Below are positions 2,044 through 10,340 of a stretch of 64,000 bases of DNA, piece by piece (positions within the stretch are counted from its first letter, which is position 1; each line of letters begins with the position of its first letter). Where the stretch lies: sequence record ON529850.1; one strand, written 5' to 3'. Both the position numbers and the translations under genes were made by a program. The notes under the pieces are model-generated. The model did no database searches. It was given only the letters and a program-made list of their open reading frames with translations, and was not told where the DNA came from.

Positions 2044-4212
2044 TCAGTTCGTGAACGACAGCGCGGAGATCGCTTGACCCGCGTTCAGGCGGAAGCGCAC
2101 CAGGATTTCGTTCCCGGTCGCGTTAGTCGACGACTGGGTGCCGAAGGTGATCTGGAACGTGCCGGTGGTCCCGGTCATGACGGCGCCCAGGGCGCATCCC
2201 GCATCCGCATCGCCCGCTTCACCCGGAACGCCGGCGCCGTCATAGGGCTTGAAGGCGTTCCACCAGCCGTTCGGCGCATTCGGTGCGGTGTCCGAAGCGC
2301 CGGGCAGCTTGATGCGGCAATCGGCATAGGTGCCCGTGACGTTGATCTTGAACGCCGACAGCGCCGAACGGTTGAACGAGAAGGTGACGTATTGCTCGGC
2401 GGAGCGGCCCACGGACAGGTTGGGACCAGCCGGCAGATAGGTCGTATAGTCGGTCTGGTCATGTTTCAGCACGCCGCCCACGACGATGGCTTCGTGGGTC
2501 GCGGGCGTAGGCGTGGAATCCCAGGCCGCCGCAACGCCGGCCGGCGTCGGACCCCCCGCCATCGACTTGCGCACAGCCGCATTGCTGTTGGGAGCCGATC
2601 CCAGGCCGGTGACCGGGACGGACATCTCATTGATGCGGCTTCCCGACGTCCCGCGCTTCACCAGGATGTTCTTGGCCTGGACGGTGGTCGTGGCCGAGGC
2701 GCCGTTGACGTTGCGCGCCGTCGCCTGAATGACGCCGACATTATGGACGTTGGCGCCGTCGATCGCCACGGTCGCCGAGGTGATCGGGAAATCAGCGGTG
2801 TTGCCGCGCGCCAGAGGCGTCGTCAGACCGATGGCGGCGTAGTTCAGCGTATCGGCCGAGATGATGCCGTTGGTCCCGGAGATCGTCAGCGGGTCCGAGC
2901 CGCCATAGTAGGTTTCACCCGGAACCAGGTTCGCGAGGGTCAGGCCGACCGTCAGGGACGCGCCGTCACCGTAGTGGGGCACGCCCGAGGAATAGGCCAA
3001 GGTGCCGGCGGCAGCCTGGACGACCGTTCCGGCGGAAATGGTGGGGTTCCCCGATCCGGCGTCGCGGACGAAGAAGACCTCATTGGTCTGACCGGCTCCA
3101 GAGTGCGCCACGCGCACCTTGTTGACGCCGATCGGCGCGACAAGGCCGGTCAGGCTGACGTCGATCGACTTCCAGAACCCAGGCGTAGCGGCGGGGAAAT
3201 CCTTCTGATCCGCGACCGTCAGTCCATCCGTCGTCCCGTTGTCGTTCTCGCCCGTCAGGACCTTGGTCGCCACCACAGTGCCGTTGAGCAGAGCCGTGAG
3301 GGTCCCGACATCGCCGGGGCCGACATCGTTGAAGACGTTGGAGTTGACGCCGTTGGCGGTGATACGCGTGACCGCATCACCCGCCACCAGGGACGAGGTC
3401 GCATGATCCGTGACGCCCGTGGCGAGACGAGGCGAGTTGCCGGCGGTGTTCGCCACCGATAGGGCTCCATTGGGGAACATCGGCGGCTGGCTCGGCACCA
3501 ACTTGCCCAACACCTCATTGAGACGATCAACCGCCTCGGAGACGGGGGTGTCGTCTTCCAACGGCACGGCGCCAGGAGTCCAGGAACCGTCACCGTGCTG
3601 CGAGATGTCGCCCAGCGGCAGACCGAAGCCGTCCTCAGCCCCTCCGCCACCGCCGCGCTCGCCCTGATACTGATAGAGTTCGAAGTAGATGCCGTCGGCC
3701 GCGACACTGACCGTGCCGGTGCCGATCGACGCCGGCTTGTCCGCCGGGATCGCCGAGGCGAACAGCAGCACGCCGGCCTGATAGTCAAACACCCACTCTT
3801 CACCCGTAGTGTCGGGGAAGAGACGCGCAGCAGGCCCGGCCGCCGGATCGCCGATGTAGACCTTGACCGCGTAGCTGGAGCCAAAGGTCGGCGGGATGAA
3901 GTCCACCAGGCGCGTGGCGATGTCGCCTTGAACGCCCGTAGCCAACCAGGCCAGGTTGGGGGCCGAAGTCGGATCGGTCGTCGCCGCAATGCGCGCCGCG
4001 CCCGTCATAACCTTCACCTCGGTGGTGTCAGCCACCGGCGCGAAATCCGGAATCGCGTCGGCGGCCGCCCAAATGACTTCGGGCAGGACCATCATCGGCG
4101 AAGGGATGATTTCGTTCGAGCCTGCCTTGTCCGCAGTCTTGGCGGTCTTCGAGACGCCGAAGAGGATGCGCTTCCACAAGAAGTCGAGTTTTTCGCTATC
4201 GAGAATCGCCAC
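2044..4212 (-). CDS. Large putative virion protein, 722 aa
   Basis: Long Thr/Gly/Ala-rich ORF in the structural module; shares its N-domain with 1350-2033 and its C-domain with 4226-6262. Confidence 0.75.
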   Translation of the reverse strand: MAILDSEKLDFLWKRILFGVSKTAKTADKAGSNEIIPSPMMVLPEVIWAAADAIPDFAPVADTTEVKVMTGAARIAATTDPTSAPNLAWLATGVQGDIATRLVDFIPPTFGSSYAVKVYIGDPAAGPAARLFPDTTGEEWVFDYQAGVLLFASAIPADKPASIGTGTVSVAADGIYFELYQYQGERGGGGGAEDGFGLPLGDISQHGDGSWTPGAVPLEDDTPVSEAVDRLNEVLGKLVPSQPPMFPNGALSVANTAGNSPRLATGVTDHATSSLVAGDAVTRITANGVNSNVFNDVGPGDVGTLTALLNGTVVATKVLTGENDNGTTDGLTVADQKDFPAATPGFWKSIDVSLTGLVAPIGVNKVRVAHSGAGQTNEVFFVRDAGSGNPTISAGTVVQAAAGTLAYSSGVPHYGDGASLTVGLTLANLVPGETYYGGSDPLTISGTNGIISADTLNYAAIGLTTPLARGNTADFPITSATVAIDGANVHNVGVIQATARNVNGASATTTVQAKNILVKRGTSGSRINEMSVPVTGLGSAPNSNAAVRKSMAGGPTPAGVAAAWDSTPTPATHEAIVVGGVLKHDQTDYTTYLPAGPNLSVGRSAEQYVTFSFNRSALSAFKINVTGTYADCRIKLPGASDTAPNAPNGWWNAFKPYDGAGVPGEAGDADAGCALGAVMTGTTGTFQITFGTQSSTNATGNEILVRFRLNAGQAISALSFTN

Positions 4213-4225
4213 GGTGCGAGCCGCC

Positions 4226-6262
4226 TTAGTTCGTAAAGGAGAGTGCGGAGATCGTCTGACCGGGGTTCAGGCGGAAACGCACGAAAATGAGATTGTCGGT
4301 GGAGTTGGTCGACGACTGAGTGCCGAAGGTGATCTGGAAGGTCCCGGACCCGCCCGTCATGACCGTGCCGGACGCGCAGCCCGCCAGGACGTCCCCGGCT
4401 TCACCAGGGATGCCGGCGCCGTCGTAAGGCGCGAAACCATCCCACCATCCGCCAGGGGCATTGGGCTGTAGGTCCGAAACGCCCGGCAGTTTGACCCAGC
4501 AACCGGCATAGGCGCCGGTGACATTGATGCGGAAGGCCGAACGCGACGCGCGTCGGAACCCGAACACCACGTATTGAGCGCCGTCACGACCGATCGACAG
4601 GTCTGGCCCCGAAGGGAGGTAGGCGGTGTAGTTGGTGCGGTTGTGTCCCAGGACGCCGGCAACGACCGCCGCTTCATGCGCAGGCAGCGCCGCAGCAGAA
4701 TCCCACGACGCACCATTGCCTGCGGGCGTGTCGCCAGCTGCAAAAGCATATCGGCGGGCATTGTCATTGTTCGGCAGCGCGCCCAGGCCGCTGACCGTGA
4801 CGTTCATCTCGTCGATACGTGCGCCGGCTCCGCCGCGCTTGATCAGAATGGTCGGGCCGCCCAGATCGACAGTGTCGACGCCGTTGACGTTGCGGGCGAC
4901 ACCGCTGATCTTGCCAGAGAGGTGCCCCATCCCGTCGATCGTGATCGTCTGGGGGGTCACCGCCTGAGGCGTCAGGGTGTTGAGGGCCAACGGCGCGTCG
5001 ATGCCGCTGGCGGGAACATAGCCGAACGTCTTGGTCGCGATCACCGGCCCGGTAAACTGGATCGGGTCGGAACCGCCGTAGTAGGTTTCACCTGCCAAGT
5101 TGGCGATCGACATCGCCACCGTCACGCGCCCGCCCTGATCGTAATGAGGAACACTCGACGAATAGGCGGGTGTGCCCCGATCCGTCTCCACCAGGGAGAC
5201 CGCCGAAATGATCGGCGCTGCGATCAGGGAATCGCGGATGAAGTTGACGGTATTGGTCTGACCGGCGTCGGAGTGCGCGATGTGAAGGCTGTTGTGCCCG
5301 ACCGGAACCGAAAGCTGATTCAGGCGAACATCAATCGACTTCCAGAAACCCGGCGTCTCCACCGGATAGTCCTTCTGGTCAGAAATCTCCAGGCCGGCAT
5401 AGACGCCGTTGTCGCCGGTCCCCGTCAGGGTGCGGGACGCCACGACGGCGCCGTTCAAAGAGACGGACACCGTGCCGCTGTCGCCAGGACCGGAATCCTG
5501 TAGGACGCTTGACGTCACTTGCGAAGCCGTCACACGCGTGACCGCCGTGCCGGGCGACAGGGTAACGCCGCTGTTGTTGGTGTAGCCGACAGCCAGACGC
5601 GGCGAGGAGCCGGCGACATTCGTCAGCGCCAGAGAGCCGTTGGGTAAAGCCGGTGGTTGCGTCGGAATCAGTTTACCGAGCACTTCGTTCAGGCGGTCAA
5701 CCGCCTCGGAAACCGGAGTGGCGTCTTCCAGCGGAACAGCGCCCGGTTGCCAGGACCCGTCACCGTGCGCTTCGACGTCGCCCAGGATGATGTGGAAGCC
5801 GTCCAGGTTATCGACCTTGTCGGCCGCATCCTTCAGACGGATATTGATCTTGGACACCGCCTCGGAGACGGTGTCGTCCTCGGTGAGCGGAACCGCACCG
5901 TCGTCCCACAGACTTTCGCCGTTCGGGCCGGGGATGTCACCCAGGGGAATGTTCGTGCCAATGGGCGCGAAGTTCTCCATGGCACAGTTGAGCCGCGCCA
6001 AAGCTTCGGCGACATTGTCGACCGGCTCCAGAACCACCAGGCCGCACGACCAGTCGACCTTGTCGCCCAGTCGGATTTGATCTGCGTCGCGCGCCTCGGC
6101 GATGACGACGTCTACCGAACCCTCAGCACCATATTCTCCCGCGAACAGAACGCCGCAGGTGTACCCCTCATCTTCGGGAGGGGACTTGATGAAGATGGGA
6201 AACGCCTCGTGGGTTTCGACGTCAACTGCGACATCGCCCGTGACGTCGATAAACGCAGCCAT
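4226..6262 (-). CDS. Large putative virion protein, 678 aa
   Basis: C-terminal ~500 aa is paralogous to 2044-4212 (both end FQITFGTQSSTN...VRFRL..GQ.ISALSFTN). Confidence 0.75.
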   Translation of the reverse strand: MAAFIDVTGDVAVDVETHEAFPIFIKSPPEDEGYTCGVLFAGEYGAEGSVDVVIAEARDADQIRLGDKVDWSCGLVVLEPVDNVAEALARLNCAMENFAPIGTNIPLGDIPGPNGESLWDDGAVPLTEDDTVSEAVSKINIRLKDAADKVDNLDGFHIILGDVEAHGDGSWQPGAVPLEDATPVSEAVDRLNEVLGKLIPTQPPALPNGSLALTNVAGSSPRLAVGYTNNSGVTLSPGTAVTRVTASQVTSSVLQDSGPGDSGTVSVSLNGAVVASRTLTGTGDNGVYAGLEISDQKDYPVETPGFWKSIDVRLNQLSVPVGHNSLHIAHSDAGQTNTVNFIRDSLIAAPIISAVSLVETDRGTPAYSSSVPHYDQGGRVTVAMSIANLAGETYYGGSDPIQFTGPVIATKTFGYVPASGIDAPLALNTLTPQAVTPQTITIDGMGHLSGKISGVARNVNGVDTVDLGGPTILIKRGGAGARIDEMNVTVSGLGALPNNDNARRYAFAAGDTPAGNGASWDSAAALPAHEAAVVAGVLGHNRTNYTAYLPSGPDLSIGRDGAQYVVFGFRRASRSAFRINVTGAYAGCWVKLPGVSDLQPNAPGGWWDGFAPYDGAGIPGEAGDVLAGCASGTVMTGGSGTFQITFGTQSSTNSTDNLIFVRFRLNPGQTISALSFTN

Positions 6263-6655: not shown

Positions 6656-7102
6656 TTACTTCTTGGCGCGACCGCGACGGGCCGGGCGAGCCGGAGCGGC
6701 GTCGTCATCGGCGGCCGGTTCGGCATCAGCCGGATCGTCCAGGTCCGAAGCGTCGACCGCTTCAACCTTCGAATAGTCCACGACCGGAGCGGCCGGAGCG
6801 GCGGCGATCGCGGCTTGCTGCATCGCCAACTGTTGAGCGACCTGCTGCTGCTGCGCCAAAAGCGCGGCGTTGGCGCCGTCGTTGGTCGACGTCTTCTGAC
6901 CCTGGGCGGCGTCCAGAACCTTCTGCGACGGCGACGGGCCTTCCGGCACATGGGCGGTCGCGAACGGTGCGTAATGGTTCGGCGACGCCTTCACGCCGGG
7001 AATCCAGGAATAGCCGCAGCCGTTGACAAGGTCACGGGCGTTGGCGCGGGTGTGCATCTCGGCTTCGCCCGACGGGCTGTAGACGACGACGGAGTTCGAC
7101 AT
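6656..7102 (-). CDS. Hypothetical protein, 148 aa
   Basis: Clean ORF with RBS; Ala/Gln-rich middle and basic tail. Confidence 0.65.
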   Translation of the reverse strand: MSNSVVVYSPSGEAEMHTRANARDLVNGCGYSWIPGVKASPNHYAPFATAHVPEGPSPSQKVLDAAQGQKTSTNDGANAALLAQQQQVAQQLAMQQAAIAAAPAAPVVDYSKVEAVDASDLDDPADAEPAADDDAAPARPARRGRAKK

Positions 7103-7247
7103 AGGTCGGGTGGTCCTGTTTCGGGGGAGTTAGGCGGGGATGAAAAGAGCGCAGGAGCACCCGCGCGAGCCCAAAACTTGTGACACGAATCGTCCTCGAA
7201 GTCAAGATTTTCAACTTGACAAGCCAGAATTCACGTCATTCAGAAAA

Positions 7248-7277
7248 CAATCCACAGACGGGCTTATCTGTGGATAA
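7248..7277. promoter_or_regulatory. Inverted repeat containing a perfect DnaA-box consensus
   Basis: ATCCACAGA (7250-7258) / TCTGTGGAT (7267-7275); TGTGGATAA at 7269-7277 is the reverse complement of TTATCCACA. Confidence 0.45.
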
Positions 7278-7291
7278 CTGACGATATGTCG

Positions 7292-7320
7292 TTGACCCGT
7301 CACATCGACCCGACTACACG
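7292..7320 (+). promoter_or_regulatory. Putative sigma70-type promoter for the plus-strand RNA
   Basis: TTGACC (7292-7297), 17-nt spacer, TACACG (7315-7320). Confidence 0.5.
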
Positions 7321-7325
7321 TTCGT

Positions 7326-7850
7326 CATCGCTTCGGTAACGGAGCGGTCGGCGACCGGGCCTCGGCCCCTAGCCGGGGTTTCTCGACTTTCCTCAACCTT
7401 CGGGAAGAGGACGGCGGGAAACTGGAGGACCAACCGGCGGGGTGACCCGCAGGACCTGGCCGTGGACACGAACCTACAGACTTCCGCAGTCTGGAGTCGG
7501 TCCTCAGGGATTGGACGGCGCCCAGCAAAGCGTCGTCACGATTTTCTCCGCGAGCCGACCGCAGCAATGCGCCGGTTCGTCCAGAGACCTACATCGGTCG
7601 ACTTGCCTCCACGGGTTTTAGCCGGCCGATATGGTAGAGACGGAACACCGGGTCACACCGGACCGCTTACCGCCGGAACGGCTTCACCGTGGTGACACGG
7701 AATGCCCAACCGGACGACCCTTCCGGGAAACCGAGGAGGACCTCGTTCTCTCCCGGCCTAATCGTAAGAGATGGTCGGACAGTTAGGTCAGCCAGAACCA
7801 GATCGTCGGGGAAGCCCGCCTCAATCTTCGGATCGAGGCGGGCTTTTGCG
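7326..7850 (+). ncRNA. Candidate large structured non-coding RNA (~520 nt), family unassigned
   Basis: No credible ORF; stems capped by GUAA (7336), UUCG (7399), GUGA (7442), GCAA (7564), GUGA (7692), GAAA (7727) and UUCG (7827) tetraloops, all read on the + strand; promoter upstream and U-tailed hairpin downstream. Confidence 0.7.
7812..7850 (+). terminator. Intrinsic terminator (possibly bidirectional)
   Basis: AAGCCCGCCTC-aa-TC-TTCG-GA-tc-GAGGCGGGCTT followed by TTGCGTT; abuts the stop of minus-strand gene 7852-8787. Confidence 0.75.
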
Positions 7851-7851
7851 T

Positions 7852-8787
7852 TTAGGCCTCGACGGTGAAGGACAGCTCCACCAGCGGAGACGTGCGCGTG
7901 CGGGTTTCCGCCTTCAGGGTCACGGTGAAATCGCCGCCCGAGAAACCCTTGCGGTAGAACGACAGGCGTTGGATGTTCTGATAGACGTAGCCGTCGGTGG
8001 TCCCGTCGGTGATGTCGATCCCTTCCGCCGGATTCTCCAGGTGAACCTTACCGGCCGCATCCGTGCGCAGCGTCAACACAAGATCAGATTCCGGAGCCTT
8101 ACCCGTCACCGTCATGGTGATGAAGTAGAGGTCCGTCAGCACCTTGCCGGACGTCTTGTCGGTCAGGCCGAAGCTGAAGGGGATGATCCAGTCCCGTCCC
8201 GCCGCCTGGGGCAGGGCGTAAACGCCTTCCACCGGCTGCACGACCGTCAGATCATTCGGGTAACGGGCCTCCGCCGCCAGCTCGATCTCGCCGTTGGTCG
8301 CCGTCATCATCCCGCCGACCGGATTGCCGGAACCGTGCGTCAGGTAGCCGTCCGGGGTCTTGAACGACGGCTCGACATCTTCGGCCGTCGTCGGCTCGGT
8401 CAGCTCCGCCGCCGGGACAACCGCCGTCGTGAAGGTCGCTTCAATCGTCTCACCGCCATAGACGGCCCGGACCGTAAACGAGATCGGACCCGGAGCATCC
8501 GCTGCCGTCCCGCCGGCGACGATGCGAGACCCCGTCAAAGCCAACAGACCTCCGGCCGTGTCCGTCAGCGAAAGCGCCGCTTCAGGGATCGAGGCGTAAA
8601 CCTCGCCCACGGGCGCGCCCATCGCCGACCCGGCGACCAGGGTGCCGCCGCTGTAGAAAAGTTGAAGAGGCAGGGCGCGGCCCTGGGCTCCGGCGCCCGA
8701 CATGCCGCCCGTGATGCGGCGCGGGAGCGGATCGCCTGGGGCGCTCTTGACGCGAGCGAGGAGATTGATCTTGCGAGTGATAGCCAT
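7852..8787 (-). CDS. Hypothetical (possibly virion-associated) protein, 311 aa
   Basis: Clean ORF with RBS (AAAAGGA) downstream of the capsid operon terminator. Confidence 0.65.
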   Translation of the reverse strand: MAITRKINLLARVKSAPGDPLPRRITGGMSGAGAQGRALPLQLFYSGGTLVAGSAMGAPVGEVYASIPEAALSLTDTAGGLLALTGSRIVAGGTAADAPGPISFTVRAVYGGETIEATFTTAVVPAAELTEPTTAEDVEPSFKTPDGYLTHGSGNPVGGMMTATNGEIELAAEARYPNDLTVVQPVEGVYALPQAAGRDWIIPFSFGLTDKTSGKVLTDLYFITMTVTGKAPESDLVLTLRTDAAGKVHLENPAEGIDITDGTTDGYVYQNIQRLSFYRKGFSGGDFTVTLKAETRTRTSPLVELSFTVEA

Positions 8788-8894: not shown

Positions 8895-9329
8895 TTAGGC
8901 CTTCGAGTTCGGAGCCGCGAACGCGTAGTACGAGACCGAAGCGCCCGAACCCAGTTCGGCGAAGATGCGGATGCCAGCGGCATCGGCGTCAGCAGCCTTC
9001 AGGGTGGCCGGGTCGAACTTCAGCACGACCACGCTGCCGATCAGGGCAGCGGCGTCGATCGAACCGCCGGGGGCGTCGACCGGGTTGGCGCCGGCGGCGT
9101 CAACGGTCTGAACCTTCAGGGCGGCGTCGCCGGTGGCAGCGTCGACGACGACGATGACGTCGAACGGCGTCTGGCCGTACATGTTCTTCAGATCGCCGCA
9201 ACCGGCGGTCAGACGGTGCAGGTCAACGACCTGGCCGCCAGCAGCCGAAGCCGCCACAGCGGTGGCGCGATCCGAAAGGCTACGCAGCGCCAGGAGGGCG
9301 TCGTAACCGTGCTTGATCTTGGAGTTCAT
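8895..9329 (-). CDS. Putative minor capsid / head decoration protein, 144 aa
   Basis: Directly downstream of the major capsid gene and before the operon terminator, as in phiCbK-like phages; function inferred from position. Confidence 0.65.
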   Translation of the reverse strand: MNSKIKHGYDALLALRSLSDRATAVAASAAGGQVVDLHRLTAGCGDLKNMYGQTPFDVIVVVDAATGDAALKVQTVDAAGANPVDAPGGSIDAAALIGSVVVLKFDPATLKAADADAAGIRIFAELGSGASVSYYAFAAPNSKA

Positions 9330-9404
9330 CTCAGAGATGTCCTTAGAAGGTGGTGGTGTTGTGGAAAGCCGGGGTGACCGAAGTCACCCCGTTGGGGTCA
9401 CCGC

Positions 9405-10340
9405 TTACGCGGTCACCGCCGCCTTCTTGATGCCCCAGACGCGAGCGGCAGCGCGGCCCGACAGCACCGCGAGGCTGATCAGCCACTCGATGCGGGTGCG
9501 GTAAACCGGCTTGTCGTTGACCTGACCCAGGTCGTCGACTTCCATCACGCCGTTTTGCAGGCCGATGACGCCCGAGTCGCCCACGTTCACGACGTAGATC
9601 GAGGTGCCAACGGGAGCGCCGCCACCGGGGCAGGCTTCGTTGAAGTCGATCACTTGCGTGTTCGTGTCGTCGTAGTCGGTGGTCAGGATCGGCAGGTCGT
9701 TATAGAACGCGACGCGCGTTCCATATTCGTCCTTGTCCCAGGTGATGAAGCCGGCGACCGAAGTCTGGCGCGAAGCGGCCGACAGCAGGTTGCGCATGCG
9801 CTTCGACATGATCAGGTGCGTGGCGCCGTCGACAGCGTCGATGGCTTCGTCCAGCACTTGCAGCGACAGAGCGTCACCGCCAGCGGTGGCGCCGGCCGGG
9901 ATCAGCTGATCGCCGACGATGCGCTTGCGCAGGCCGTCGAATTCACGCGGATCGGCTTCCGAGTCGCCGTTGATGATCTTGCCGGCCAGGAAGAGCGACA
10001 GGGCCTTGACCTTCATCTTTTCCTGCATGGTGCGGATGTTCGCGCCATGAGTACGGATGAGGGCCTTATCGACGTCCAGGTCGCCGCCGACGATCTTCAG
10101 AACTTCGACTTGCGAGTTGATGACGCCGACGCCGTTCCCGTAAGCTTCGTTGAAGCCACGGAAAGCCACGCCCGGCAGCTGGCCTTCTTGGGTGTAGGTG
10201 TACGAACCACCCGGCACGTCCATGAAGGGGAGGACCTTCAGGAGGTCCGGATAAGCGAACAGCTCGATGATCGCCGAGCGCTTCACTTCGTCGTTGCCCA
10301 TAGCCAGGTCAGAGGCTTCGAGCAGGGTCAAGGCAGCCAT
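9405..10340 (-). CDS. Major capsid protein, 311 aa
   Basis: HK97-type MCP features (LPFMDVPGGSYTYTQEGQLPGVAFRGFNE; GGDLDVDKAL; GDSEADPREFDGLRKR); strong RBS AGAGGAG; preceded by a scaffold-like gene. Confidence 0.9.
   Translation of the reverse strand: MAALTLLEASDLAMGNDEVKRSAIIELFAYPDLLKVLPFMDVPGGSYTYTQEGQLPGVAFRGFNEAYGNGVGVINSQVEVLKIVGGDLDVDKALIRTHGANIRTMQEKMKVKALSLFLAGKIINGDSEADPREFDGLRKRIVGDQLIPAGATAGGDALSLQVLDEAIDAVDGATHLIMSKRMRNLLSAASRQTSVAGFITWDKDEYGTRVAFYNDLPILTTDYDDTNTQVIDFNEACPGGGAPVGTSIYVVNVGDSGVIGLQNGVMEVDDLGQVNDKPVYRTRIEWLISLAVLSGRAAARVWGIKKAAVTA

Follow-up and report, generated by a model that had tools for sequence, protein, structure and literature searches.

A predicted large structured RNA gene at an operon boundary in the head module of giant Brevundimonas pondensis phages

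The stretch of DNA analysed here, hereafter the window (64,000 nucleotides (nt)), belongs to the 321.5 kb genome of Brevundimonas phage vB_BpoS-Gurke (Gurke), a member of the Dolichocephalovirinae whose host is Brevundimonas pondensis LVF1. Window positions 7100-7900 are 100% identical to positions 255100-255900 of record ON529850.1, so that a record position minus 248000 gives the window position used throughout. All 58 annotated genes in the first 34 kb lie on the - strand, among them those for the portal, the scaffold (phrog_206), the major capsid protein (9405-10340) and head proteins. Within this head module, between the minor capsid gene region and the head protein genes, lies a gap of 749 nt (7103-7851), and it is here that we identify what is very probably a genuine structured RNA gene, at 7326-7850 on the + strand. 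The gap is the largest in the first 34 kb and about twice the size of the runner-up (the next are 389, 361 and 351 nt), in keeping with the claim of the original prediction, made without database searches, that this is the only long non-coding gap in the structural region. That prediction had also placed the RNA opposite to every flanking gene, as the 58/58 annotated genes on the - strand bear out. The word 'antisense' used for it is right as to orientation but wrong as to overlap, since the RNA covers no coding sequence.

A blastn search against phages recovered the region of the RNA in single copy from exactly seven records, all of them giant B. pondensis phages from one study. These fall into three lineages: Gurke and Kikimora; Domovoi, Kabachok and Papperlapapp; and Marchewka and Bambus. 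Core identity between lineages is 41-47%. Gurke and Domovoi, for example, share 55.6% overall and 47% over the core, with 89% over the first 53 columns and 85% over the last 60. The predicted layout, bounded by a promoter and a terminator, has three hairpins at the 5' end, two domains built on four-way junctions and another four hairpins:

7292-7320, + strand: promoter of the host sigma-73 (RpoD) type, with a -35 element TTGACCC at 7292-7298 and a -10 region ACTACACG at 7313-7320
7326-7850, + strand: predicted mature RNA of ~525 nt, its 5' end placed from the promoter to ~5 nt and its 3' end in the U tract
7327-7348, + strand: H1, a hairpin of 9 bp whose GNRA loop is GUAA here and GAAA in the Domovoi and Marchewka lineages
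7349-7375, + strand: H2, a two-tier hairpin (7349-7352/7372-7375 and 7357-7360/7365-7368)
7379-7421, + strand: H3, a three-tier hairpin with a UUCG cap, replaced by UCCG or UACG in the Domovoi lineage and by CUG in that of Marchewka
7424-7549, + strand: middle four-way-junction domain, with closing helix H4 (7424-7429/7544-7549) enclosing H5, H6 and H7
7434-7453, + strand: H5, with a GUGA loop
7455-7508, + strand: H6, within the middle domain
7509-7543, + strand: H7, within the middle domain
7551-7579, + strand: H8, with a GCAA loop, GCGA in the Marchewka lineage
7587-7635, + strand: H9, a long hairpin (7593-7600/7623-7630 and an apical part) whose apex varies by lineage
7636-7751, + strand: 3' four-way-junction domain, with closing helix H10 (AGAG 7636-7639 / CUCU 7748-7751) enclosing H11, H12 and H13
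7642-7670, + strand: H11, with a GUCACA loop
7674-7712, + strand: H12, with a GUGA loop here and GCGA elsewhere
7713-7747, + strand: H13, with a GAAA loop
7753-7778, + strand: H14, a hairpin with a conserved loop containing GUAA
7792-7803, + strand: invariant stretch CCAGAACCAGAU, then.GUCGGG, predicted to be unpaired or to form the loop of a weak H15, directly 5' of the terminator
7810-7853, + strand: intrinsic terminator with a 13 + 3 bp stem, a UUCG cap and then CUUUUGCGUUU, kept in all seven phages

The promoter elements that had been proposed, TTGACC (7292-7297) and TACACG (7315-7320) separated by 17 nt, are present, and the TTGAC and CTA.A motifs are kept in all seven phages. The published Caulobacter RpoD consensus is TTGaCgS / GCtANAWC (PMC8144410, PMC13004042); every one of its positions is matched in five of the seven copies (Domovoi, Kabachok, Papperlapapp, Marchewka and Bambus), the Gurke copy being a weaker match. 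A simple scan for promoters of the Escherichia coli type returned nothing at the RNA locus because the -10 element is of the Caulobacter type. The loose pattern TTGAC-N16-18-CTANA has 31 sites in the window where 0.24 would be expected. The RNA promoter is the sole such site on the + strand of the window and the sole one in the structural region. The other 30 all lie on the - strand between 30750 and 63249, are near-identical and are spaced 0.4-3 kb apart, each with TTGACAC followed after 15-16 nt by CCTAGA, CCTACA or GCTAGA; these are probably the promoter array of the early small-gene region. Since the pattern is common to the small-gene region and absent from the rest of the structural region, the RNA is probably read by the host polymerase and timed with the small-gene region, unlike its late neighbours.

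At the other end, the UUCG-capped and U-tailed terminator folds on the + strand as had been claimed, with the segment 7808-7850 reaching -30.1 kcal/mol. Its U tract exists on the + strand only, with none on the - strand, and the terminator abuts the stop codon of the convergent gene at 7852-8787.

The fold of the RNA itself is far more stable than chance. The minimum free energy of the 525 nt of the + strand is -254.5 kcal/mol (z = -6.2, with dinucleotide shuffles as the controls for folding), and none of 100 shuffles was as good. The - strand of the same region gave z = -2.5, and two other gaps in the structural module gave z = -2.6 and -3.5. Six hairpins with stable tetraloops that had been picked out by eye in the sequence fold as described, namely 7329-7346 (GUAA), 7390-7411 (UUCG), 7437-7450 (GUGA), 7552-7578 (GCAA), 7687-7700 (GUGA) and 7724-7733 (GAAA). 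The density claimed for such loops also held: the region contains four GNRA/UNCG tetraloops on stems of at least 4 bp, against a mean in the window of 0.69 per 525 nt (standard deviation 0.81) and a window maximum of 4. This enrichment is real, yet alone it is not decisive. Two long-range helices in the original prediction did not survive comparison between phages. The pairing of GAGGACC (7425-7431) with GGUCCUC (7499-7505) is broken in Kikimora by a G-to-A change, which strengthens an alternative helix between GAGGA (7425-7429) and UUCUC (7545-7549), whilst the arms of the second, CGACCGG (7352-7358) and UCGGUCG (7594-7600), sit in the separate conserved local helices H2 and H9. In the five-phage alignment there are 119 G-U against 9 A-C combinations, and the consensus fold energy is -220.8 on the + strand versus -200.7 on the - strand; overall the + strand consensus fold is better by 20-33 kcal/mol. 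The fold is assigned to the + strand because G-U pairs far outnumber A-C and the consensus energy is better there.

The strongest evidence comes from compensatory change between the lineages. RNAalifold applied to a plain MAFFT alignment gave 160 pairs, with 91.7% of cells paired and 39 pairs changed on both sides, against 33-46% paired and 2-11 double changes over the whole RNA when the 3' partners were slid by 1-3 columns. As a semi-independent test, covariance models of the middle domain (R1) and the 3' domain (R2) were built from the five sequences of the Domovoi and Marchewka lineages only. Both Gurke and Kikimora were located by these models at the homologous places: R1 finds Gurke 7425-7598 at 21.9 bits and Kikimora at 27.8 bits, and R2 finds Gurke 7636-7810 at 32.8 bits (E-value 1e-7). 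Pairs changed on both sides number 8/33 in the 5' domain (1-2 in the slid control), 21/67 in the middle domain (1-4 slid) and 24/56 in the 3' domain (1-7 slid), with 0/500 shuffles as high in either of the latter two; both of these last counts overstate the number of independent events, because their alignments are structure-fitted and the lineages only three. In the outer helix of H13 all five pairs are changed on both sides, and these changes, together with those in H12, are hard to explain other than as conserved pairing. H1 has one double-sided change (G-C to A-U), as does H15, which folds at -1.7 kcal/mol in Gurke. Moreover, the loops drift within their class (GUAA/GAAA, GUGA/GCGA, GCAA/GCGA and UUCG/UCCG/UACG), six or seven of them being kept to GNRA or UNCG. 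Thus stems are kept in the homologous loci with compensatory changes, and the tetraloops are kept by class. Two parts hardly vary at all: H1 and H2 form a nearly invariant 5' block, with 89% identity between lineages whose cores share 41-47%, and the CCAGAACCAGAU stretch is invariant in all seven phages. Compensatory changes beyond the controls, with promoter and terminator signals on the structured strand, are also what generic tests for a structured non-coding RNA gene ask for.

Within the middle domain of Gurke and Kikimora, positions 7514-7546 comprise an 8-bp hairpin and then ACGAUUUUCU, which resembled a terminator in a scan. In the conserved fold, 7424-7429 is the partner of the U-rich run (helix H4), and the other lineages lack a U run.

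A protein-coding gene, a structure arising by chance, or an element acting at the DNA level (an origin or a packaging site) would each account for parts of these data, and we regard this group of explanations as scarcely credible. A + strand open reading frame (ORF) of 213-214 codons is annotated over the RNA in two records, where DOMOVOI_05190 (locus 2958-3602) and KABACHOK_04620 (locus 2888-3526) are 'hypothetical proteins' covering both the RNA gene and its promoter. However, the long + frame is open in 3/7 phages, the Domovoi lineage only, and is closed in Marchewka, Bambus, Gurke and Kikimora. The annotated start in Domovoi and Kabachok lies upstream of the RNA promoter, and a - strand frame is equally open. 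Gaps between lineages are of 1, 2, 4 and 6 nt, that is, not multiples of three, and no Pfam match was found for the frame at the RNA locus. A coding gene was therefore rejected on the three grounds of an unconserved frame, non-triplet gaps and the absence of a Pfam match, and DOMOVOI_05190 and KABACHOK_04620 are, from this comparison, almost certainly not genes. For a role at the DNA level it can be said that DnaA-box-like repeats adjoin the RNA gene. Against it stand the asymmetry between G-U and A-C and the RNA-specific tetraloops. The repeats in question form one further feature of the gap:

7250-7277, no strand assigned: inverted repeat ATCCACAGA / TCTGTGGAT, a short way upstream of the -35 element, with columns invariant in all seven phages

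Positions 7269-7277 read TGTGGATAA, the reverse complement of the high-affinity DnaA box, which is printed as TTATCCACA (PMC4285127). One exact copy exists in the window, and the occurrence of a single DnaA-box 9-mer there is not significant. The inverted arms read ATCCACA / TGTGGATAA, and the Domovoi and Marchewka lineages have a third copy. The gene ending at 7102 probably has a divergent promoter, with the repeat situated between that promoter and the one of the RNA; in Gurke alone the repeat is also terminator-like on the - strand. It could be a candidate operator for DnaA or for a phage regulator.

No known RNA family was recognised. Rfam 15 gave no match at the gathering score anywhere in the window, nothing meaningful at 7050-7950 with E-values up to 10, and nothing meaningful at the Domovoi and Marchewka loci with E-values up to 1. 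At lax thresholds the terminator gave chance matches to the rnk leader and to a CRISPR repeat, and one hairpin a chance match to guanidine-II. ROOL, GOLLD, OLE, RNase P, tmRNA, 6S, SRP RNA, group I and II introns and the known riboswitches were all without a match in Rfam 15. Neither papers on these phages nor a 2023 screen of viral structured RNAs mention the RNA. The earlier suggestion of a possibly new class thus agrees with a search that returned no family and with covarying homologues in related phages. Its other suggestion, a divergent ROOL- or GOLLD-like RNA, fails if taken as membership, as there is no match at E-values up to 10 and no transfer RNA (tRNA) in the window. ARAGORN detected neither tRNA nor tmRNA across the whole window, all 29 tRNAs of the Gurke genome lying outside it. 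In phages and prophages ROOL and GOLLD often adjoin tRNA genes or tRNA islands (PMC12286853, PMC5737381).

The likeness is nonetheless instructive. ROOL (Weinberg et al. 2017, PMC5737381; cryo-EM in PMC12286853) is likewise a free-standing, multi-junction phage RNA of ~0.5-0.6 kb (581 nt on average; PMC5737381), of unknown function and with many stable tetraloops. The Gurke RNA differs in having no covariance-model match (E-values up to 10), no tRNA neighbourhood and no detected pseudoknots. ROOL is moreover found in several phyla, whereas the Gurke RNA is confined to one narrow clade, lytic giant phages of an alphaproteobacterium. GOLLD shares with it an ornate, modular, phage-borne character and an uneven conservation, one part being better kept than the other. 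However, GOLLD is often >800 nt, near tRNAs and conserved mainly in its 3' half (Weinberg et al. 2009; PMC12286853), whereas the Gurke RNA is ~525 nt, is best conserved in its first ~55 nt and last ~70 nt and is without a model match. With OLE it would share a kind of mechanism, that of a large structured RNA working with protein partners. OLE is encoded on the chromosomes of extremophilic Firmicutes and has its dedicated partner genes adjacent; the Gurke RNA has no constant neighbour gene across the seven phages and no match to the OLE model. Judged by predicted fold and model searches, this is a large ornate phage RNA like ROOL and GOLLD in kind and a member of neither.

ROOL, GOLLD and OLE all proved to be homo-oligomers (PMC12286853), and the Gurke RNA might similarly be active as a multimer, a cage or ring assembled from RNA only through loop-loop and A-minor contacts. 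Its ROOL-like size, phage origin, multiple domains and many GNRA loops fit such an assembly. H5 (7438-7449) and H11 (7649-7660) are 92% complementary, with a GUGAC/GUCAC core in two of the three lineages. This complementarity is lost in the Marchewka lineage, where the GUCACA loop has become a UUCG-type loop. There is also no covarying palindromic loop, no match in sequence or structure to ROOL or GOLLD and no tRNA in the window. We consider an RNA-only assembly improbable.

A ribozyme of a new class is less probable still, and by a wide measure. Its size, its several junctions, its many GNRA loops and some unpaired nucleotides that never vary are features linked by the Breaker group to sophisticated biochemistry (PMC5737381). 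However, no known ribozyme family in Rfam is matched, no substrate or processing site is evident, and the distribution is very narrow.

We then asked where else the RNA occurs. A blastn search against plasmids found no homologue; exact-pattern scans of IMG/VR gave nothing or chance matches, and two Joint Genome Institute (JGI) metagenome scans gave chance matches only. A scan of GTDB genomes produced 82 matches in 596 Gb, none extending past the seed. A search of IMG/VR anchored on the protein of the flanking gene found nothing, and a capsid protein search of the same database retrieved 14 relatives, 0/14 with the RNA. On four JGI contigs (Ga0184640/Ga0184634) the 25-nt search pattern lies no more than ~90 nt from the end of the contig, a hint of a repeated element at those ends, unrelated to the RNA beyond the seed.

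The RNA is also absent from phiCbK, Bajun, CcrColossus and CcrPW. The first two have a short gap at the equivalent junction, and an annotated terminator stands just after the minor capsid gene in phiCbK and CcrColossus. The capsid protein of CcrColossus and CcrPW is 90% identical to that of Gurke, and in both an unrelated protein gene of phrog_1987 occupies the slot of the RNA, also on the opposite strand. These genes are gp083 of CcrColossus (locus 3384-3815) and gp089 of CcrPW; gp088 of CcrPW has a weak phrog_28405 match (gp088/gp089 locus 2920-3815). Colossus gp083 was considered as a diverged copy of the RNA and rejected, being of a real protein family. Because the RNA is missing from relatives whose capsid protein is 90% identical, and a protein gene fills its slot there, the RNA is, on the evidence of gene order, accessory ('moron-like') cargo that the giant B. 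pondensis phages carry in their head module, where two operons meet. By the same reasoning from gene order, the slot, which separates the minor capsid gene from the operon after it, is a hot spot of exchange, a putative cargo site. The RNA resembles a phage moron in having its own promoter and terminator, in its opposite orientation at a terminator-promoter junction, and in sharing its slot with a protein gene in CcrColossus and CcrPW. The difference is that the cargo here is a large RNA, not a protein.

The gene at the far side of this junction is not constant either. The convergent neighbour in Gurke, GURKE_04100 (7852-8787, - strand, 311 amino acids (aa)), is present in four of the seven phages; two have a 143-aa gene instead, and in Domovoi it is missing. 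That all seven giant phages keep the RNA while the neighbour gene varies favours selection acting on the RNA itself and tells against a constant partner in the adjacent gene. GURKE_04100 itself has no PHROG or Pfam family and a weak sequence match to PDB chain 9hz8_M, named 'Structural protein' (E-value 2.5e-4). The possibility that it is a paralogue of the capsid protein was rejected after a test.

The original prediction had proposed a role in virion assembly, and the comparison with relatives makes this unlikely, as phiCbK and Bajun have a short gap, and CcrColossus and CcrPW a protein gene, in place of the RNA. The RNA could in principle serve packaging in the manner of the phi29 pRNA, or act as a scaffold that sets head length; it is located in the head module, and phages of the Dolichocephalovirinae have elongated heads. 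Like the phi29 pRNA, the Gurke RNA is a structured RNA encoded by a prolate-headed phage and tied to head genes, in its case by position. The pRNA measures ~170 nt, and packaging depends on it in all its relatives. The Gurke RNA has three times that length and is absent from close relatives that have the same head genes (CcrColossus, CcrPW, phiCbK and Bajun). Moreover, its promoter is of the host housekeeping type and not common to the surrounding late genes. A core role in head assembly or packaging is unlikely because the RNA is accessory and absent from relatives with the same head genes, and we rate a packaging or scaffold function of this sort very low, level with that of a ribozyme.

The position also admits a simpler reading, in which a strong convergent promoter and its terminator act as a transcriptional insulator that blocks read-through from the capsid operon into the one that follows, the RNA product being incidental. 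The RNA gene faces the upstream - strand genes and occupies the site, between the minor capsid gene and the next gene, at which phiCbK and CcrColossus have their annotated terminator. Such an insulator would leave unexplained the compensatory changes in >40 pairs, the retention of loop class and the invariant blocks, and in relatives a short terminator suffices. We think this quite improbable, if a little less so than packaging.

The invariant stretch next to the terminator raises the question of base pairing. It could be the seed of a regulator of host or phage mRNA, with the remainder of the RNA giving stability or binding a chaperone, and in favour of this the stretch is invariant, unpaired and beside the terminator. 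In the Domovoi lineage the stretch is antisense, without a mismatch over 21 nt, to codons 5-11 of a small gene for a coiled-coil protein, as found in two Brevundimonas genomes; at the coiled-coil gene site the Gurke form matches 18/21 plus G-U pairs. However, the target site varies at synonymous positions and matches at 15-18/21 in 14 other Brevundimonas loci, no B. pondensis record is among the exact matches, and the 82 genome matches are mostly chance. Matches in the phage window are of 12-13 nt only and show no excess (8 versus 3.6 expected). An ornate fold of 500 nt is also unneeded for seed pairing. Regulation through a seed is accordingly rated as improbable as an RNA-only assembly, and the 21-nt antisense match is at present a weak lead, not a finding. 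The coiled-coil family (83-84 aa; for example loci 1546-1797 and 4473-4736) is apparently restricted to Brevundimonas, and its gene is always situated between a DUF4170 gene and an inositol-monophosphatase gene (16 loci).

The reading that we favour, with some reserve, is that the RNA is a protein-binding scaffold or decoy acting in trans; among mechanisms it is a tentative choice, whilst the joint proposition of a structured RNA gene working in this manner we hold to be slightly better than an even bet. On this model the host RNA polymerase would transcribe the RNA, probably from early infection, from a promoter of the same general class as the ~30 promoters of the small-gene region. The transcript would be freed at the terminator and would act in trans as a folded RNA. 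Its binding surfaces may be the two near-invariant parts (H1 and H2 at the 5' end, and the unpaired CCAGAACCAGAU stretch preceding the terminator), and the variable but structurally conserved domains would hold these in place. The benefit to the phage might be host takeover or counter-defence and not the building of virions.

Several points weigh against this interpretation. The literature searched holds no RNA sequencing of these phages, and the transcript is predicted only. The independent lineages are three, all from one host species and one study, and the covariation counts rest on few events, the R1 and R2 alignments having been fitted to structure. H1 and H2 are the most conserved helices, and the pairs of H2 are invariant, so that covariation offers no test of them. 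H8 and H15 are weak in some lineages, H8 being poorly formed in that of Marchewka. Finally, no particular protein partner is indicated, the convergent neighbour gene being inconstant, and the scaffold or decoy mechanism is one that we only infer.

A bolder view, to which we give a low but not negligible chance, is that the RNA is the first of a new class of ornate, large RNAs encoded by phages, exchangeable cargo of giant Caulobacterales phages with a sophisticated activity of its own. Candidates for that activity would be catalysis as a ribozyme, an RNA-only nanostructure, or service as a dedicated decoy for a host protein of defence or housekeeping. Bacterial and phage RNAs of at least ~500 nt with conserved multi-junction folds are rare, and almost all earlier examples have come with unusual biology, such as ribozymes and the ROOL, GOLLD and OLE assemblies. 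The present RNA comes with cultured phages and a cultured host that is not a pathogen, and is therefore open to direct study. Moreover, giant-phage genomes annotated as '85% hypothetical proteins' hide RNA genes, and in two records this RNA is mis-annotated as protein.

Lastly, two minor observations concern other places in these genomes. In the Gurke window, a second place at which 525-nt windows reach four GNRA/UNCG-capped hairpins lies at ~9050-9900 on the - strand, where the coding strand carries the hairpins, around the capsid gene end and the gene that follows. At the Marchewka locus, positions 4162-4246 on the - strand, which are intergenic and downstream of the RNA locus, have a sub-threshold Rfam match to the Bradyrhizobiaceae small RNA BjrC68 (30.3 bits against a gathering score of 39; E-value 1.4e-4).

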